DNA of 64,000 nucleotides from Mantamonas sphyraenae STR306 (Eukaryota; Protista; CRuMs): positions 62,001 to 126,000 of the forward strand of contig JAPMXV010000006.1 of NCBI GenBank assembly GCA_026936335.1. Reading direction: 5' to 3'. The notes beneath the pieces were generated by a model that saw only the letters and a program-made list of their open reading frames with translations, searched no databases and had not been told where the DNA came from. Numbering within the stretch: position 1 is the first letter of the stretch; each line of letters opens with the position of its first letter. Below, piece after piece: positions 43,736-53,952 of the stretch. Position numbers and translations under genes: made by a program.

Positions 43736-44074
43736 ATGAACCCTCGCACACTGGTTCACGTGTCGCAAGGCAAGTGGCACGTGTGATGCTTTTGACTGTC
43801 ATCCTATCCATGTTGTTGTCGCAAGGGCGTGGCGATCAAACGCTTCCTCCCCATCTCCCACAGACGGCTCATCGTCCCGTTCCGGCGTCGTGGTCGTCGT
43901 TGCAGGTGCCACAGGTGCCATTGGCAGCCGCGTGGTCCACCATCTGGCCTTGGACGAGCGTGTGGCCGAGGTGCGCACGCTCAGCAGACGGCCGATTTCC
44001 GACCAAGCTGCGACCGAGCTGTTTGAGCTCCCGGAATCCCATCTTTCCAAGGTTACGCGGTTTGTGGTCAATTA
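43736..44074 (+). pseudogene. 5' half of a TIP30/HTATIP2-like NAD(P)-binding oxidoreductase gene interrupted by the Fanzor element
   Basis: VVVAGATGAIGSRVV (Rossmann GxxGxxG), VRTLSRRP, KVTRFVVNY. Probable first exon 43736-43769 with GC-AG intron 43770-43863. Confidence 0.8.
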
Positions 44075-44385
44075 TAGGGGTTTGCGATTGCGCGCGCCCT
44101 CTTTCCCTGGTCCTGGATGGGGAACATACGTTGTCGAATAAAGTGCCTTGCCCGATCCTCTGCCACGACTGGTAGTTGATTGATGTCGCCCTGCGTCCTT
44201 GACCCACAAGGGCGCCGCCGGGCGCGTTGCGCTGCGCTCCCGTCAAGCAAACCATCAGGATCTTTTCCTATGCCGACACGTCTCGAATGTTTGATGATTG
44301 GCCATCCAAAATCACGCTGCAGAGTTGCCAGCATCGGGCAGTCCTTGTGTTGCACGGGGCCCGTTCCTCCACCGGGGCCAAGGAA

Positions 44386-47300
44386 ATGGATTTGGACGAA
44401 GGGTGGGCCGCGGTTTTGGGCTCCTCTCTGCCGGTGTCACAACCGGACTCCAAGCCATCTAGGGGCAATCGTCGGGACCTGCGAGCCTTTGTGAAGAGTG
44501 GCCTGGGTGTCCCCAATGTAGTGTCTGGTCACGCAGACCTTGCCCGAATCACACACGTGCAGGATGTTCCCTTTGGTCTGGTTCTGTTCAAGACGCTGGA
44601 CATGGACCACATTCCTGAACAGTGGAGCAGGGTCTACCCACGCAAGCGTCAGCACCAAGACAAAACCTGCATCCGCAGTGTCGTCCAGGAGCGAAGTGAG
44701 ACGCTGACAGCCTTTGATCATGTCGCAGCAGGCATTTCTGAAGATGGGCTTGTGTCCATAGGCAAGCTGCGCCCAGCCCAGCTGCTGGCGCGAGACGTCG
44801 TGCAGATGGTGAAACTGCAGTCAAAGGCCAGCGTGGTGTCGCAGGTCACGCTGCTTTTCGATCTTGGAGCATACTGTGAGTGCTTGACTGGGTGAGAGCC
44901 AAGCAAACAGTCCAACTCACACCTACATCTCGCACGCCGGTGGCAGACTATGCCCTCCAGGTCCTGCCGCTGGCGTCCACGCTGGTGGCGCAGAAGGCTA
45001 AAGTTGACGTTGCAGTCGAGGGCGCGCTTTCATTTTTCCGTACCTTCCAGGAGACTCTGCTGTCCACTGACTTGGATGTCAAGTGGCATGTTCAGGTAGC
45101 CCTCGATTCACACGGCCTTCTCTTTCCTGGGAAGGGTCAGGCATGGGATGACGGCAAGAGGAGCACGCACCTGCAGGATGTTTTGAAACGGTTTGAGAAC
45201 GCTGCACAACAGGTAGGGTACAGGGGCGATGCACGGGAGCAAAGACGATGCAGTAGGCTCACACACCACCACGACACAGAAAACCCGACCCATGGTGAAA
45301 GACGAGATGTACGGCATGTTCAAAGAGGAGTGGGAGGCACAAGGAGGTTTGAAAGGCGTTTCGCTCCTTTGGGAGGCTGGTGTGTCGGCGGATGACCATG
45401 TGCACGCGAAGCATGCTGAGATTAGCAAAGAGCATGGTCACTTTGGTATCTCAGTTGGGGTTGATAGCGATCTTTATGCACAGGTACCGCTAGCGGATTG
45501 CGCGATTGGCATCATTGACGCCCGCTCTGGCTGTGGGACGCTGGCTTCGCAGAAAGCGCGTCAGCACGGAGCTATTGTGGCCCTTTACGCTGGACGGGGT
45601 GATGCCGCACACGGCTGGCTCCGTCTCCCCCTGCCACTGGCGAAGGCGGCGGCGGAAGCCCTGTCGCTCCCCAAGCGAACGACTGCCAATTCCATGCGCT
45701 CCTGGCTGAATGATGCCCTAGCTCTTCGCAACGAGGACACGTTCGCTTGGTTAGACGACCATATGCAGGCTGCCACGGACGCGGACCTGGTGCTCGCGGG
45801 CAAGAAGATGCAGACGGCGCAAAAGCAGCTCGGGCTCCGCAGCGATCCGTGCGCCCTGGCTGAACCGCACAGTGATGATCTACAGTCAAAGAAGAGCAAG
45901 GAGCTGGCGGCACTGTGGGAACTGGTCAAGTGCGGTGCACGTGGGGGGCGCAAGATTTCGTCGATTTCGTACGTGCGCACTTTCTTCGGCCCGTATTTTG
46001 GTTTGAAGGCCTTGAAGGACTTGCAGGACGAGATTATGGGTGCATCAAAGGACAACGTGTTTCTGGTTTGTTTGAAAAGCCCTTCGAGCGTGGTGATTGA
46101 GCTTGGCGAGGAAGGGCCGAGCCTGCACACGGGTGTCTTCGGGTCGAACAACCACCAGGCCTACGTCCAGTGTGTGCAGCCTGGCAGAATGGCCAAGAAG
46201 AAGCGTGCGAAACACCGTTCCAGGAAGTCTAGGAGAGGCAAGGGAAAGCGGCGGCAAAGTGTACGCGTGAGGTCACTTCACACGGCGGACGCTGGCATGC
46301 TGGAGGCTATGGGAGGGGACATTGATGATGTGCCTGATGAGAAGCTTGTACTTTGTACCGGCGAGGGGAGCGACAGCGACCTACACAACCTTTTTGGTGG
46401 CGACGACGATTCGCAGATGCGCATCGGACGCACGGCCCTGCAAACACTGCACGGGCGACTGCGAAAGGACGCGTTCTTGTGCACGGTGCAGCTGCGGTTT
46501 GAGCTGGAAGGCAACATGTTGTCCATCTATGGCTGTGATGGGGACGTTGTAGTGTTGGCCGTGGCCACCCACGTGCGCGATGCCCTGCTGCGTGCCAATG
46601 CACAGCTCGCCGTCGATGAGGAGCAGCAGGCGCTGGCTGACAAAGAATCTGCACGCAGTATGAGTGTTGCCGAGGCATGCGAAGAGGTGCTGAGGATCGA
46701 GGAGGGCAAAGCAGACGAAGCAACGAAGCTCTTGCCCGACCTGACGGCCAGAGATGTGCAAGCTTACCTGGCTGCCGACCTGCGCAACAAAGAGATGGGC
46801 CATCTGCGCAGTGTGCTAGGGATCGCACAGCACCCAACGACGTTCAACGTTGCCCCGGAAGCAGATACGCTCGGCGATCCGTTGTTCAAGCTCTTGATTG
46901 TGTTTGGCGAGATGGCCAACGGGATGGCGCGAGCTGCCTTTCGTTGCTTGACCATAGCCATGGACGAGCTGGGTTCAAGTGCAGAGGGAGGGACGGAGCC
47001 AGAAGGTACGGTGGTGGAAACAACGCGCAAGCGCAAGCAGGTGGTTCTTCTTGCTGCGCCAGTGCACCAGGGTGAAGACGTGCAAGACGACTTTGAGGAA
47101 GATGATGATGACTTTGTGCAAGTGCTCAGCTCTGGGGAGGAAGATGAAGAGGAGGAAGAAGAAGAGGACGACGATGACGCCGATCATCTGGAGGTGGAGG
47201 AAATGAGCGATGGAGGAGAGGAAGAGGACGAGGACGTGGTGCAAGGTGAAATCGGCACTGCGTTCTTCGAGGATAAGGGCCTGCTTGTGGCCTTTGTGCG

Positions 47301-49950
47301 CCAGCTGGCGCGCCTGGTGGCGTCCAGGTCGGAGGGCGAAAACATTTTGGTGCTGAAACACACGCGTACGGACGACTGGGCCAGCATAGACGAGCAAGAG
47401 GACAACAACCCAGCTGAAACCCCCAACCTTGCCATGGTCAAGGATGCAGAAGACTTGGACGAGGTGCTGCTGGACCTCGGTGATCTTCAGCACATTAGTC
47501 TGCAGCCAACCGCAACGCAGCGTACGCTGTGGATGCATTTTAGGACTTACAACAGTCAGCAATGTGCAGAGGAACTCTATGGTGAGTGGAAGGGCCTTTG
47601 TACTCGGTTTGCACTGCGTGGGGCACTTTGGGAGGCGGGGATCGAAGTATGCCACAAACGGCAGGTGGTAGAGTGGCTCGAGGAGGCTTGGGACATGGAA
47701 TCTGGGGTCATCGAGGAGCGGTTTGACAACATTGGCATGCGCTGGACTGCTCATGCAGGTCTGGATACTTCCACAATGGACAAGGGCTGGGTCATGGCCA
47801 AGCTGAAGAAAGCTGGCATCAGCAAACAAGTTTTCACCGGCGCACGCTCGCTCGCCACTCTGCAGACGTGGACACATCTGGCCAAGGCACATGCTGACGG
47901 GCAAATCACTGGGCTACCGCGCAAGCAGAGGTCGCTGTGCGCCGCAGTGACAATCACACCTACAATGATGCGCAGGGCCATGGAGTACCTCGCGCGTGGA
48001 CCGCAAGAGCAACACAGGGACACCACCGCCAACGACGGGGACGGCATCCTTGCTGAGCTGAGCAAGCTGAACCTTCCCAGCCTCAACGCTCGCTGCAAGA
48101 ACGAGGACTTTGCCACAGCAGTTTCCAACTGGTCCCAACAAGGGTCGTCAACGGAGACGTCGTACCGCGCACAGGTCAAAGCTCGTGTTTGCCGCCTGGT
48201 GGCCCAGTTTTCGGAGACGGATGTGCTTGGCAACAAGGTGTCGCACACCTACCGCGAAGCACGCGCAAGCGCGGCGCCGTGCCTGGCGTTCCTGTTTGGC
48301 AGTGCTGCGTTGTCGACCAAGGACAGCTTGCATCACTTGACTGGTACATTGAGCATTGCTGGCACCACCCTGAAGGCATGCGCGTACTCGATGGATGACA
48401 AACCGGCGAACCTGATGCGAGCGTTTTGGCGGTCTCAAAAAGCGGCGGTGCAGGAGTTGATCCTACGGGATGGCAACGAGGACGGAGCAGGCGACGAGGT
48501 CGGTGATGCAGGCGATGCAGTGGCGGACGGAGACAGTGGCACGGACACAACAGCTGCTGCGGGCGATGGAGGCGAGTGTGATGGCGGAGGTGAAGGGGAA
48601 GGTGAAGCAGAGGCAGTTGATGGGGGAGTGGCTGCTGGTGGAGGCGAGGCTGGGCATGAAAGGGAGATGCAGGTGGGCGATGAAGGCGAGTGTGAAGGGG
48701 AGGAGACAGAGGCAGAGGGTGGAGGGGAGGCAGAAGCAACAGGTGGCGAGGCACAGGACGGAGTGGACGACGGAGGCGAGGCAGAGAGCGGAGACGATGC
48801 AAAGAGTGGAGAGGAGACACGGGCGGCGGATGGAGGAGAGGCACAGGACGGAGTGGACGGAGGCGAGGCAGCAGGCAGCACAGATCCTCTGGTCATCGAT
48901 CTTTCGCTGCTGGAGCTGCTCGTGCCCTCGTCGAGGTCAATGGCGTATGCTTACCATGCCATCAAGACGTGGAAAGAGGCTCTGAACGAGGTGAAAGGAA
49001 AGAAGGCACGAGCCATCAAGGTCGCCATGTTCCTCGGCTTGATTCAACTGGTGGGCAAGGAACGGGCGAAGGAGCTGGCACTGGAACAAATCAAACTACT
49101 GGAAGAGAACGAAGCGCCGATGCCTGAAGACACGCGTGCGAGCGGACAACCGTGCCGCGGTGAGATGCAAGCCAAGAGGCTCCGGCCGCCTGTTGGTCAA
49201 CAACAACTCAAACAGACCATTCAAGTGTTGTCCGAGCACAATCTGGCGTGTTCTGACCCTGGCAAGGGAGAGACAACGACGGTCGCAGTTAATTTTGACT
49301 CGGCGCACGTGCAAGATGCCTGCGGGTCCCTCCACCAGGTCGGCACGTACTTTAAGGTCCCGAGCATCCCACACCAACAGGCGAAAGTGGACAATCACAC
49401 ACGGTCTTCTGCACGCCACACACGCTTCAAGGGAGGTGATGCGACCGCCAAATTCAAGCACATACACAAAGCTCAAGGCAGGCGCCCTGGGCAGCAGCTC
49501 CACCACAACGCCCAGCAGACGACCGTCAAGGGCAACGTCAGGCCCGTCATCCATGTCGGAGGCAAGGTGACATGGAGAGGCGAAAGCGGGGGATTCAACA
49601 ACACCATGACCCAGCTGAGCAGACACACGCTCGTGCTCCGGGTGAACGAGTTTCGGACGTCAAAACGGCATTCCCACGGCTGTGGATCCCATGACCTCGA
49701 GTTCGACGGCACGATGGGCTCTACATCCCCTCTCGGCCGCTACCAGACTTGCCCTCACTGCCCCAGTGGTGCACTGCATTGCTGTTCAGCTTCCGGCGTT
49801 TTGCGCCTGATGCTCTCTGGAGCTACCGCACGAAACCGATGCTTCCAACGAGACGAGAACAGCTGCCTGAACTTTGCATTTATTGTGTTCAGCTATGCCA
49901 CTCGCGGATGCCGACCAGCTCACCTGCAAGGAGCGCGAGGATCCAGCTGA
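44386..49950 (+). CDS. Giant Fanzor1-like RNA-guided endonuclease, ~1,808 aa; exons 44386-44875, 44947-45212, 45280-49950 (alternative ATG at 44287)
   Basis: RuvC-I SDPG (D at 49255), RuvC-II VNEFRTSK (E at 49648), Zn-finger H/C...CPHC, RuvC-III RDENSCLN (D at 49852), terminal G.RP.HL. Introns gtgagt...ctcac...cag and gtaggg...ctcac...cag join three ORFs in frame. Confidence 0.85.
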
Positions 49951-50081
49951 TCCGCCACACGAGCTCCACGGACCAAGCCACGCACACGAACCCTTAGCAA
50001 TGGGTTCACTTGATACATCCTTCGCAGCATCTCGCGTCCAGACTGTTTTCGGTCAAGGGCGAGGTGATTTGCGAAGGACAG
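49951..50081 (+). ncRNA. Putative Fanzor omegaRNA scaffold (5' limit uncertain; guide would derive from the flank beyond 50081)
   Basis: Hairpin gaaccc/gggttc (49988-50007). Long stem tccttcgca/tgcgaagga, catctcgc/gcgaggtg, gactg-tttt-cggtc (50018-50078), ending 3 nt from the right end. Confidence 0.7.
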
Positions 50082-50573
50082 TACGACACGGGGGAGTTGC
50101 CCGACGCCGCCTTTGCAGACGTGGACGCAGGCATTTCGGCGATGGGCATCTACACGGCCCAGGCGGAGAGCGAGGAGCACTTTCGAAAGGTTGAAATTGA
50201 CCAAAATCTGCTCGTGGCAACAAGGGTGGCCAAACAGCGTCCTGGAGTGGCACGATGGTCCTTCCTGTCTGGACAAGGGGCCAAGAAGGGAGGGTGGGCC
50301 ATGTTTGCCCGCGTCAAGTTTGACGCAGAGGAGGCGTTCCGCAACGTCGATGGCATGGGTCTTGCGGTCACTGTACGCCCCGGGGGCATCCGTGGACGCA
50401 AGCAGTACCCGCTGTGGGCCGATTGGGCGGCGGAGTGGCTGCCTGATTTTCTGACGATCCACACCGACCAGATCGCAAGAGGCATGATTGCAGCTGTGCT
50501 TCTGCCCATGGAGGACGTCCAAGAAGTGTATGAAAACCAAGAGATCAAGGAATTGGCCAAGAAGTGGCCCTGA
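50082..50573 (+). pseudogene. 3' half of the interrupted TIP30/HTATIP2-like NAD(P)-binding gene
   Basis: YDTGELPDAAFADVDAGISAMG...FRKVEID..L..A...FLSGQGA...FARVKFDAE...VRPGGI...IARGMI...VYENQEI; open frame with no stops. Confidence 0.8.
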
Positions 50574-50652: not shown

Positions 50653-53600
50653 ATGTCACACAATGACGAAGAAATAGACGATGGTCTTGAACAGGAGATG
50701 GGCACGATTGTGCTGATGGGATCGCAGGACAGCGGCAAGAGTTGCCTCGCGGCGACGCTGTGCTTCTCCAGCGACGAGGACGAGGAGCGTCTGAGCAACT
50801 TGAAGTCCGAGTACGAGAGCATGTTCCATGCAGTTTCGCAGTACGAGCACAAGGTGTGGCTCAGCGACACGGGGAAAAACGAACGAGAGGCACAAACCAC
50901 CCTCCGTGGCAACTGCCATCCCCTGACGATTTGGGGCAACCTTTGGAATGTCATCGACACACCCGGTGACCCTCGGTACGGAAAACGCGTGGTCCAGGCG
51001 CTTGGTCTGGCTGACGTTCTCCTCCTTGTCGTGTCTGTGCACGAAACGCAACTCGTTGACCTCTCAGCACCGAGCGGCCTATTTGCACAGCGCCTCAGCA
51101 TGGCGTTTATGTTTGGTGTGCGTCAAGTCATTGTGTGCATCACCAAGCTCGACGAGCTTCCCGCCAAGGACCAGGAGCAGGCGTACGTCGGAGCGTGTTT
51201 TTCTGCTGCCTCGGCACTCAAGTCAGTCGGCTTCCTCGCCAAACGCCACCGCATCCACTTTGTGCCCACGTGCACTGTCAATTCGATGAAAGGGGCCAAT
51301 GTGTTTGCACCGGACCCAAACACGTTTCCGTGGTGGACCGGAACGAGTTTGAAAGAGCACTTGCGAACGTGCACACGGCCGCGTGGCCGCCACGATGCTT
51401 GTGGAGTCATGTTGGTGCACAGCTGGCACTGGAATGAGACTTTGATTGCCAGTGGCTTTGTCCTCCAGGGCTCGTTTGTCCCGCGTCGCCGCCTGCTCTC
51501 CCTGCCTGGGCACAACGAGCTCCCTGTGAGCGTGCTGGAGCGTTGGCGAGAGATTCGGCCACAGGTGTTCCGTGGAGACATGGCTGGTTTGGAGGTGCAG
51601 CGCAACATCTCCCTCGAGAACGCTCAGGAGGTTCTGCGGCAAACGCTGATTTTTGATGCGGACGATCAGTTCGATCCCTACCCAGAAAACCGGCATGTGG
51701 CCCCTGTGCACGGCACGTCGTCGCTTCAACACCATCCAGAGATCCCCGACAAGGTGCGTTTGTTTGTGGCCGACATCCGTCTCGTGCGCACGCGCCTGCA
51801 CAAAAGACGCAAGCATTTTGACATCGGCACCACGTGCACATTCAGCAACATGCTTGTGTGCACAAAGGTCCATGTCGTGGCCATTCTGGCTCGTCTCGAC
51901 GGCGAGTTCAACGTGGTCGAGCGCCACCCGCAGCGTCTGCACCGCAAAGACGTGTTGCGGGTGCTGTTTCGCTCCGACGACCCCGTCTTTGTCCAGAAAG
52001 GACCCTTCATGCCGCGCCTGGAACGTATGGTACTCAGTGATGATCTGGGCGTGGTTGGAGCAGGTGTGGTGCGCAAGAAGGCCCAGGGGCAAACGCTTGT
52101 CGCCGCCATCCACACCAACGGACAAGACTCTGCGTGCCAAGATGGTCTGGCCCAGCTGCTCGAGGAGGACTTTCTCGTGGAATGGCGCCTGATCCCACGC
52201 ACGTTGACAAAGGAAGCCCTGAATGGGGTGCAGCTGCTCGTGACCTGCATGGGCCGTTCCAGGAGCGAGCATGAGGTTTTGGTCGACTTTGTCAAAAGCG
52301 GTGGCTCCTTGCTGAAGCTGGTGGACCATCGACGTGGCACTGACAGGATTGTCACCGAGTATGGATTGGAACGAGTCAAGCGCGAGGAAAGCTTCTTGTC
52401 CGTGGGGCGGCTTTTCTTCCGGGGTGAGGTTGGTGCAGCCAAGCGGCGCAAGGAGCGCGCCGATCAGCTGGTGACTTTTGAATCAGTGCTCCGTGGACAC
52501 GACAGTGGACGTTGGGCCACAAGCAACCACGAAGATCTGGATGATGTGAGCCACACCAGCAGTAGCAGCAGCATCAGCAGCAGCAGCATCAGCAGCAGCA
52601 GCATCAGCATCAGCAGCAGCAGCAACAGTGGTGGTGGTGGCGGCGGCGGCAGTCAGGAACGGGAAATGGCAGTTGCCAGGGAGATGGAGCGATTGGCAGA
52701 GAGGAAGCGCCGCAAGGAACGCAAGAAGCGACGCAAACAACGTCGCAAGGCCATATCCGAGCTCCAGGAGAGCACACGTCACCGATTGTTAACCTCACTG
52801 ACGCAAGAGGAGATCCTTGGCTGGAACCAAGAGGAGGTGATGCGTTTCGTGACTGGACACCGTCAACTGGCCGCGTACCGCAAGAGCATCCACAAGAGTG
52901 GCATGGTGGGCAAGAATCTGCTCGAGTACGGACGCACAGAGTGGGAGGCAGTGTTTGAGGGCGAATTTGCGGGAGAGATCCGTGGCCGCAAGGCCATGGC
53001 CATCATTGCCTCTGTGCTGGAGACCATTGCCGACCGTGTGGACAGGCAAAACAACATCGATGCGGGCAAAGGCAAGACGACATCTGTGCAGCAGCCGTCG
53101 CTCACACGAACCCTCAGCGCCCAGGAGGTGCTGGAGGACGTGGATGGCAGCGGAGCAGGCGAGCTGGGTGAAGCCATGGAGACGCTCACCAGCGAAGCCA
53201 GCATCGAGCTGAGCCTGGAGGAGTCGAACGAGTCGCAATCCCTGCGCCGGACCGAATCGTGGGCACAGACAGTGGAGGAAGACGCAGATGGGGTGGACGT
53301 GGAGGATCTTCCGGATGAGGTGTGGATGCGCGTGTTCAGCTTCCTGCACGACGACGTGCATGCAATGTGTGCCCTTGCCCAAACCTGCGGTCTCTTCAAC
53401 GACTTGGTCGATCGTGAAGAGAACTGGCAGGCCTTGTGTGCCACCCATGGTGCTCTCGGTATGATCCTCCCGCGAAACCTGCTCGTGGACAAGGATCTCG
53501 CCGAAGCCCTGCTGGACATCACTGAGTTCAAGCTGCGGTTTTACGCCTTCTGGGACGTGACCCGTGCCGGGACGTTCGGGTGTTTGTCGCGTGGCGTTCA

Positions 53601-53952
53601 CGGCAAAGGCCGGTGGATGGAATCCGCGAGTCGAGACACAGGCACGTCTCTCGACGTGATGGAATCCCTGCCTGGCGTGAAAATTGTCGCTTCGCGCACC
53701 AAGCGCCGGGGCGGTGGCGCAATGCTCGTCTATGCGCGACCTGGCCATCATCTCGACAACCGAAGAGGACAAGCCCTGTTTCTCGTCGACGACCTGCGCT
53801 TTGGCGAAAAGCAAATGCTTTCACGAACGTCCCTCACAAACCCATCCAACAATGCACGGGTCTGGCTCAAGAATTTCGCGCATGTGGCATCTTTGACGAG
53901 GATCCAGGCGGACAGCGATCAAGCGGGCAGCTCGTCATCCTCTTCTGCCTGA
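50653..53952 (+). CDS. Multidomain protein: divergent EF1A/HBS1-like translational GTPase (domains I-III) + GIFT/GATase-like alpha/beta segment + SAM-like + F-box
   Basis: G1 GSQDSGKS, G3 DTPG, G4 TKLD; domain II GDMAG; domain III end LGVVGAGVV; SAM-like WNQEEVMRFV...GMVGKNLL; F-box LPDEVWMRVFSFL...LAQTC. Confidence 0.75.
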   Translation: MSHNDEEIDDGLEQEMGTIVLMGSQDSGKSCLAATLCFSSDEDEERLSNLKSEYESMFHAVSQYEHKVWLSDTGKNEREAQTTLRGNCHPLTIWGNLWNVIDTPGDPRYGKRVVQALGLADVLLLVVSVHETQLVDLSAPSGLFAQRLSMAFMFGVRQVIVCITKLDELPAKDQEQAYVGACFSAASALKSVGFLAKRHRIHFVPTCTVNSMKGANVFAPDPNTFPWWTGTSLKEHLRTCTRPRGRHDACGVMLVHSWHWNETLIASGFVLQGSFVPRRRLLSLPGHNELPVSVLERWREIRPQVFRGDMAGLEVQRNISLENAQEVLRQTLIFDADDQFDPYPENRHVAPVHGTSSLQHHPEIPDKVRLFVADIRLVRTRLHKRRKHFDIGTTCTFSNMLVCTKVHVVAILARLDGEFNVVERHPQRLHRKDVLRVLFRSDDPVFVQKGPFMPRLERMVLSDDLGVVGAGVVRKKAQGQTLVAAIHTNGQDSACQDGLAQLLEEDFLVEWRLIPRTLTKEALNGVQLLVTCMGRSRSEHEVLVDFVKSGGSLLKLVDHRRGTDRIVTEYGLERVKREESFLSVGRLFFRGEVGAAKRRKERADQLVTFESVLRGHDSGRWATSNHEDLDDVSHTSSSSSISSSSISSSSISISSSSNSGGGGGGGSQEREMAVAREMERLAERKRRKERKKRRKQRRKAISELQESTRHRLLTSLTQEEILGWNQEEVMRFVTGHRQLAAYRKSIHKSGMVGKNLLEYGRTEWEAVFEGEFAGEIRGRKAMAIIASVLETIADRVDRQNNIDAGKGKTTSVQQPSLTRTLSAQEVLEDVDGSGAGELGEAMETLTSEASIELSLEESNESQSLRRTESWAQTVEEDADGVDVEDLPDEVWMRVFSFLHDDVHAMCALAQTCGLFNDLVDREENWQALCATHGALGMILPRNLLVDKDLAEALLDITEFKLRFYAFWDVTRAGTFGCLSRGVHGKGRWMESASRDTGTSLDVMESLPGVKIVASRTKRRGGGAMLVYARPGHHLDNRRGQALFLVDDLRFGEKQMLSRTSLTNPSNNARVWLKNFAHVASLTRIQADSDQAGSSSSSSA

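Follow-up and report, generated by a model that had tools for sequence, protein, structure and literature searches.

Within the 64,000-nt stretch of the genome of the deep-branching protist Mantamonas sphyraenae STR306 analyzed here (the window; GCA_026936335.1, contig JAPMXV010000006.1, positions 62,001 to 126,000, with coordinates below counted from the start of the window), a TIP30-like gene is split by a 6,007-bp element (44075-50081) that carries an expressed gene for an exceptionally large Fanzor protein. Fanzors are eukaryotic relatives of CRISPR-Cas12 that cut DNA under the guidance of an RNA. The motifs, family profile and structural model of its C-terminal part support a Fanzor RuvC/zinc-finger nuclease, a probable PIN/FEN1-type 5' nuclease domain lies near the N-terminus, and the left end of the element is an inverted, decayed right end of another Fanzor family. 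The interpretation that we favor, with reservations discussed below, is a non-autonomous Tc1/mariner-type Fanzor1 residing on one homologue of a diploid. A Fanzor1 element with a TA duplication and no transposase is already known from SPu-1 of Spizellomyces punctatus; new here are the size of the protein, the predicted fused 5' nuclease and the recycled end.

The element is flanked by TA at 44073-74 and 50082-83, and its ends read TAG...CAG. A second copy of the same family (family A), on contig C52, is 72% identical overall, terminates at the same nucleotides and is likewise bordered by TA on both sides; these termini bear out the boundaries given by an earlier sequence-only reading. Deletion of the element together with one TA yields the predicted continuous TIP30-like frame, 224 codons long and free of stops. 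The two halves of the host gene are collinear because the 5' half matches Rossmann/SDR families (Pfam Epimerase, E 3.5e-4; TIGR01777, E 7e-4) and the 3' half matches residues 80-235 of human TIP30 (2bka; phmmer, E 0.0012), and the TIP30 alignment spans the VNY/DTG junction, where a homologous oxidoreductase had been expected to align without interruption. In the 3' half, Phe occupies the place of the Tyr in the YxxxK motif of TIP30.

An empty allele, which the sequence-only reading had suggested looking for, was found by comparing the left junction with assembled contigs of public runs from a single study (X1-X4; the assembly may derive from X1 and X2). A contig of X3, a run labelled as DNA with a question mark that behaves as a transcriptome, extends from 43855 to 44074, where a single TA leads directly on to the right flank, a precise empty junction. 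This contig represents another allele rather than a splice product because it differs from the assembly at three positions (C>T at 44031, an additional A after 43867, and G>A nine bases after the TA). The DNA run X2 forks at 44074, with one branch entering the element (depth 39) and the other leading into a 69-nt alternative (depth 19; contig depth is not equal to copy number) that has the same 39-nt overhang as the X3 empty allele and was identified by this geometry, not by its letters. The paper describing the M. sphyraenae assembly, which makes no mention of Fanzor, infers diploidy (PMC10492846); together with the empty allele in the reads, the simplest reading is that the insertion is probably heterozygous. 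That the empty contig could instead derive from a paralogue, or from a host transcript after splicing had removed the element, would fit the RNA-like behavior of X3 and the AG at the end of the element, but the join of 44074 to 50084 has no GT donor at that point, the contig carries the three allelic differences, the DNA run forks with the same 39-nt geometry, and the flanks were found once in a search of the organism's own genome; this explanation is largely refuted and, in our estimate, extremely unlikely. Camouflage of the element as an intron is not supported by the X3 contigs. Furthermore, the filled allele differs from the X3 and X4 contigs by a 1-nt indel at 43867. In the segment 43729-43890, the extra base after 43867 in X3/X4 places an upstream ATG and a signal-peptide-like stretch in the Rossmann-fold frame. 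The filled host allele may already have been frameshifted upstream of the insert, an intron in this segment being the alternative.

The Fanzor gene is transcribed and spliced: a 5,477-nt X3 contig starts at 44404 and skips two segments with GT..AG borders (Table 1). The start codon, ATG at 44386, lies outside the long open reading frame and is common to the C52 copy. Exons of 490, 266 and 4,671 nt give a protein of 1,808 aa, a length that, like the residue numbers, comes from exon-length arithmetic, the exons having been searched separately and never joined. No transposase was found inside the insert.

Table 1. Features of the element and of the interrupted host gene (window coordinates).
Feature	Coordinates	Strand	Basis
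Host gene 5' half, TIP30/atypical SDR, with GxxGxxG strand and putative start	43890..44074	+	Pfam/TIGR match, continuous frame
Left TA of target-site duplication, predicted 3' part of the target-adjacent motif (TAM)	44073..44074	+	sequence; single TA in empty allele; TAM role by analogy with SpuFz1 (PMC10432273)
Whole element, 6,007 bp	44075..50081	+	C52 copy with same termini
Left-end module, inverted, frameshifted family-B Fanzor 3' end	44075..44335	-	nucleotide match, 77%/265 bp
Exon 1, 490 nt, ending with first PIN strand, Asp159 (44860)	44386..44875	+	X3 contig; motif in families A, C-G
Probable 5' nuclease domain of the PIN/FEN1-XPG type, spanning both introns	44845..45880	+	D159, D217, D290, D314, D316, D360
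Intron 1, 71 nt, GT..AG	44876..44946	+	skipped in X3 contig
Exon 2, 266 nt, carrying Asp217 (45105), the second PIN acid	44947..45212	+	X3 contig
Intron 2, 67 nt, GT..AG	45213..45279	+	skipped in X3 contig
Exon 3, 4,671 nt including stop	45280..49950	+	X3 contig, sequence
Lys/Arg-rich patch, possible nuclear localization signal	46174..46278	+	composition only
Acidic low-complexity insert 1	47035..47292	+	sequence
Second Gly/Glu/Asp-rich insert	about 48470-48880	+	sequence
Fanzor RuvC and zinc finger	49240..49950	+	D1578 (DPG, 49255), E1709 (49648), H1716/C1720/C1743/C1746, D1777 (49852)
Predicted omegaRNA scaffold, including right TA	49951..50083	+	fold z -3.7; 90% identical in C52
Right TA of target-site duplication	50082..50083	+	sequence
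Host TIP30-like gene 3' half	50082..50573	+	phmmer to 2bka
Predicted flank-derived guide, about 15 nt	50084..50098	+	position by analogy with PMC10711439, PMC10432273

The motifs on which the sequence-only reading had based its assignment to Fanzor were all located, from DPG at 49255 through NEFRTSK (49645-49665), the His/Cys zinc finger (49669-49761) and RDEN (49849-49860) to G.RP.HL from 49906 onwards, and the three RuvC catalytic residues are all intact. The Fanzor motif of Bao and Jurka, D-X(125-275)-[TS]-[TS]-XX-zinc finger-X(5-50)-RD (PMC3627910), is present, with a spacing of 133 from Asp1578 to TS and of 29 from the last Cys to RD. Fanzors are further characterized by DPG at RuvC-I and a shifted RuvC-II Glu six residues before the finger (PMC10711439, PMC13565253); here, six residues separate Glu1709 from His1716. 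The genome (25,061,354 bases in 78 contigs) encodes 31 related Fanzor C-termini that form approximately nine families, most of them in open frames above 1,400 aa, and columns D, G, E, T, C, R and D are invariant among 19 sequences. The finger is of the form H-C-C-C, the first ligand being His in family A and Cys in family B and in the outside homologue P0048, each of which has four Cys. Searches with the single C-terminal sequence gave no significant match in Pfam (PF07282, E 0.13), the PDB or a collection of 5.8 billion sequences; 18 of the 19 family members match PF07282 (best E 2.3e-5), and the family profile matches ApmFz2 at E 9e-5, PpFz1 weakly over the last 95 positions, and 406 library proteins. 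The low-confidence model of the C-terminus (pLDDT 56) has Cas12f1, ApmFz2, SpuFz1 and TnpB as its top Foldseek rows (E 0.016-0.03, no single row being significant) and aligns to SpuFz1/PpFz1 at Z 7.4-7.5, in a Z range of 7-9 that also includes Cas12j and RuvC, consistent with the RuvC fold anticipated by the sequence-only reading.

The traits of the Fanzor1 type that this element shows are the large size, the eukaryotic DDE transposon context, the G.RP C-terminal helix and the absence of an IS607 serine recombinase; in a quick tree without labelled references, the Fanzors of this genome group with the outside homologues P0048 and P0011 on one side of a short branch. The 131 nt that follow the stop codon fold with a z-score of -3.7 (-2.6 in the C52 copy and down to -7 in other families) into a short hairpin near 49988-50007 and a long terminal stem. 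Both hairpins are kept in C52, which is 90% identical in this region and has indels in the loop. An Rfam search gave no match, and the putative omegaRNA scaffold may begin inside the coding region. By analogy with characterized Fanzor1s, the right TA would belong to the scaffold, 50084-50098 would be the guide and the TAM would end in TA; two family-A copies are insufficient to fix the remainder of the TAM. At guide position 9 (50092), the empty allele has A in place of G, a mismatch that could be protective. An "escape mutation" interpretation of this difference was not adopted, given its chance occurrence of about 16% and the tolerance of GtFz1 for most single mismatches (PMC11423790). Of the "probably active" RNA-guided system proposed from the letters, transcription, splicing and intact catalytic residues are now in place, and the RNA-guided cleavage and the omegaRNA are predictions by analogy. 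That reading had recognized the Fanzor and both element ends correctly; it had overlooked the N-terminal domain, the Tc1-type partners and where the left end came from.

The N-terminal domain contains six of the seven PIN active-site acids in order. The motifs hhhD-x-G, h-D-[SR]-H, G-x-S-A-D, D-S-D and R-G-D, arranged as in the active site of FEN1/XPG, are kept in families A and C-G, family B has canonical E-A-E and D-S-D, and the AD, DSD and RGD columns are invariant in the N-terminal alignment. In the order and spacing of the acidic motifs, the H3TH-like GxD helix and the best structure and profile matches, the domain resembles FEN1/XPG/EXO1, the T5/T4 5' nucleases and XRN; unlike these, it is fused to an RNA-guided nuclease and has one Glu replaced. 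The database tests are each weak and all point in one direction: Atlas features indicate viral XRN_N (0.91, locus L051), and all seven PDB matches of profile A6 belong to the PIN superfamily (E 0.03-0.65), including T4 RNase H and MARF1 NYN. The alignments (A1, A2, A6) and the model were built on loci L055-L068; the Atlas result and the homologues from outside this genome are independent of them. One such homologue, P0048 (Logan SRR7244345; 1,224 aa, intronless), aligns to the PIN domain at E 1.5e-4 (hhalign) and ends in Fanzor. In another contig (L070, ENA ERZ26871208), XPG-like exons that best match FEN-1 and XPG_I and match P0048 at E 1e-11 are located directly upstream of Fanzor P0011, with which, judging from their position and from intronless P0048, they would form one protein. 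Both have a textbook XPG-N start and H3TH, the latter being altered in the M. sphyraenae genome. The PIN-Fanzor fusion is, by sequence comparison, also present in two unrelated eukaryotic contigs. Five aligned columns (A, D, D, D, D) do not vary between M. sphyraenae and either of them, the pattern of metal ligands under selection. In a third locus (L071, P0053), no PIN domain was found upstream of the Fanzor; word-index searches for further fusions returned only the seeds and are uninformative given their length and word limits. No natural fusion of a Fanzor with a 5' nuclease was found in the Fanzor literature searched, the coverage of which is incomplete. We consider the PIN/FEN1-type fold very probable and place less confidence in catalytic activity.

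The left-end module matches the 3' end of family B with 77% nucleotide identity over 265 bp (E about 1e-52), spanning the last ~50 codons of B (frameshifted), the omegaRNA region and the terminus, and lies 50 nt upstream of the ATG, in the place where a promoter is required. Similar modules are found at C52, C43 and C49, giving four copies in two families, A and C; the family-C RuvC is only ~35% identical to that of the family-A element. An assembly error is not the explanation because C52 and both family-C elements start likewise. In C52, the decayed coding part of the module has been deleted and the terminal 150 bp have been kept. A solo family-B 3' end of 383 bp, 100% identical to the C10 copy, is located within a tandem ankyrin-repeat gene array (G000:C51:218749-219131; L049:7750-8132), a ghost-like, RNA-only locus; solo ends of this type could be the kind of piece from which the left end was recruited. 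The first 9 nt of its right flank, TA included, are the same as in the right flank of the window element.

The genome encodes 19 DDE_3 genes, nine of which precede Fanzors of families D, F and I in the same orientation; eight further ones stand alone. A TA follows the 3' end in 19 of the 24 Fanzor copies outside family I. Because approximately 30 Fanzor copies are present, nine of them downstream of Tc1-type transposases, the element is most likely a non-autonomous Tc1/mariner-Fanzor1 that would be moved by a Tc1-type transposase in trans. The Helitron2 and IS607 types are ruled out by the exact TA duplication and by the absence of Rep/helicase and serine recombinase. Among the 3' ends of 28 copies (L016-L045, L049), each family has its own first base behind the target dinucleotide (permutation P 0.0004): C in families A, H and I, G in B1, and A in C and D. 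Family I, which lacks the TA, shows four different dinucleotides with C after each. Between the two family-A copies, 10-17% of the 4-fold sites differ in the last ~340 codons compared to 43-64% elsewhere, and the left 150 bp are 91% identical. Judged by these differences, the copies are mosaics in which an old and divergent middle is enclosed by ends and a RuvC-omegaRNA part that were shared recently, the expected outcome of gap repair that switches template between related elements. At the right end of the C43 copy (L018/L051), a few additional bases match the family-A terminus exactly and are absent in C49, a possible end exchange between families. In the family-G copy L028 (C68), the putative omegaRNA contains a ~150-bp tandem duplication after the stop codon. 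Furthermore, at G000:C34:611103-626310, a locus unmatched by the Fanzor protein search, two identical element ends face outward 15.2 kb apart, possibly delimiting a large TA-flanked element.

Several other explanations have to be weighed, two of which concern the N-terminal domain. It could act on RNA, either trimming the long mRNA 5' to 3' to the mature omegaRNA or clearing R-loop RNA in the manner of XRN and T4 RNase H. Viral XRN_N, T4 RNase H and MARF1 NYN are indeed among its closest look-alikes, and an omegaRNA would have to be freed from a 5.5-kb spliced mRNA, but XPG-N and H3TH motifs are present in the outside homologues, which best match FEN-1/XPG_I, the H3TH of FEN1-family enzymes binds duplex DNA, and RNA maturation in small Fanzors does not depend on a domain of this kind. 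Accordingly, we rate action on RNA as a minority possibility, albeit the strongest of these alternatives. That the domain is catalytically dead or a non-nuclease DNA-binding fold, the protein being an ordinary oversized Fanzor1, is compatible with the Glu to Ser replacement in E-x-D of families A and C-G, the altered H3TH and the weak database scores; the conservation of A, D, D, D and D out to two unrelated eukaryotes argues against it, and we regard it as unlikely.

The other two concern the ends and the spread of the element. The inverted family-B end might produce an outward omegaRNA that is loaded by a family-B Fanzor in trans, so that both strands would be attacked; the module holds the entire B omegaRNA region up to the terminus and TA in four copies and two families, C52 has kept the terminal 150 bp, and the joint alignment contains a stem with 95% pairing. 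However, predicted B-type pairs are retained at the rate of random decay (P 0.3-0.5), the z-score of the terminal hairpin falls from -2.7/-3.8 in true B ends to about 0, the window copy folds worse than all 200 of 200 shuffles, conservation of the non-coding part does not exceed that of the dead coding part, and no X3 contig covers the module (such a library would lose small RNAs). The module serves as the terminus, a second guide is not supported, and such a two-guide element seems to us slightly less plausible still than a dead domain. Alternatively, the elements could spread without a transposase if the Fanzor cut guide-like sites and repair copied the element in (RNA-guided ectopic homing). 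The right flanks of both family-A copies start with CG.CAC, the first base after TA is family-specific, the solo 383-bp family-B end exists, and the terminal inverted repeats are poor. However, once family H is removed, similarity ends after base 1 (positions 2-6, P 0.35), so that guide-directed choice of targets finds no support beyond that base; in addition, exact TA duplications are typical products of DDE transposases, and Tc1-type genes adjoin sister families. Ectopic homing is, in our judgment, very unlikely.

The favored interpretation, a non-autonomous Tc1/mariner-type Fanzor1 on one homologue, can be phrased as a succession of steps. A DDE transposase from another element would have cut and pasted the element into a TA; the gene is transcribed and spliced to yield the 1,808-aa protein; as in characterized Fanzor1s, the right-end omegaRNA with ~15 nt of flank as the guide would guide RuvC to cut the empty site immediately 3' of a TAM that ends in TA, either on an excised sister chromatid or on the empty homologue. 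In the least certain step, the PIN/FEN1-type domain would trim the 5' ends of the break, resulting in repair by homologous copying of the element. Template switching between related elements during such repair would give rise to the mosaic build, and the left end would have been taken over from the right end of another Fanzor family to act as a terminus. Several observations weigh against this interpretation. The empty allele persists although the Fanzor gene is expressed, and the terminal inverted repeats are weak, a degenerate match of 14/27 nt that is reached by 0.4% of the 27-mers in the window, compared to clean repeats of 30-33 bp in SPu-1-type elements. The middle 1,200 aa of the protein contain no recognized domain. 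The first Glu of E-x-D is Ser in families A and C-G, no individual PIN match in the databases is significant and all are below the curated family cut-offs, and the PIN model has a pLDDT of 52, with T5 flap endonuclease ranked first by Foldseek at E 0.06. Finally, the WED domain of Fanzor1 carries a TDG motif (PMC10711439); TDG was not found at the matching place in families A, B and C, where WED/REC could not be located by sequence, and we therefore file the element as a divergent Fanzor1 variant.

The element shares with SPu-1/SpuFz1 and other Tc1/mariner-associated Fanzor1 elements (PMC3627910, PMC10432273) the TA duplication, the lack of an internal transposase, the DPG, shifted Glu, zinc finger and RD motifs, a structured RNA from the stop codon to the right end, ghost-like RNA-only copies and many copies per genome. 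It differs from them in the size of the protein (1,808 aa compared to 633 aa in SpuFz1, about three times the usual size), the N-terminal PIN/FEN1-type domain, the two introns, the lack of a detected TDG motif in WED and the left end built from the right end of another family. The chimeric Fanzor1 elements DFa/PPa (Sola2), PGv-1, ESvi-1B and MCi-2 likewise show interchangeable 5' and Fanzor modules within one genome (PMC3627910); there, the shared module carries a transposase, whereas in M. sphyraenae the elements have in common, at their 5' side, a Fanzor 3' end in flipped orientation, and it is the protein's middle that has been exchanged. The flipped right end shows how new mobile units can arise when one Fanzor cassette adopts the end of another. 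The predicted guide is analogous to that in restorative homing by TnpB of IS200/IS605 and IS607, in which a right-flank guide targets the empty site (reviewed in PMC13565253). Homing has been demonstrated in bacteria for TnpB and only cleavage for Fanzor1; the host here, M. sphyraenae, is eukaryotic and diploid, and an empty homologue occurs in it naturally.

More tentatively, and as a reading that we consider less likely than not, the protein could belong to a lineage of natural two-nuclease RNA-guided enzymes, spread across several eukaryotic groups, that would cut the empty allele, resect the break, and drive homing between homologues as well as module swapping. If so, this would be a natural eukaryotic RNA-guided gene drive with built-in steering of repair. 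Saito et al. describe the biological role of cleavage by Fanzors as unknown (PMC10432273). If the cutter is fused to a 5' nuclease, this would directly indicate that the break is meant for recombination repair, and the fusion would be the natural counterpart of engineered exonuclease-editor fusions. The locus combines, in a cultured diploid, an expressed Fanzor, a predicted guide, a natural empty homologue and ~30 sister insertions, so that homing is testable from existing reads and in culture.

The genes that surround the interrupted host gene encode the proteasome subunit Rpn3/PSMD3 upstream and, downstream (50653-53952), an EF-Tu/EF1A-like GTPase fused to an F-box.

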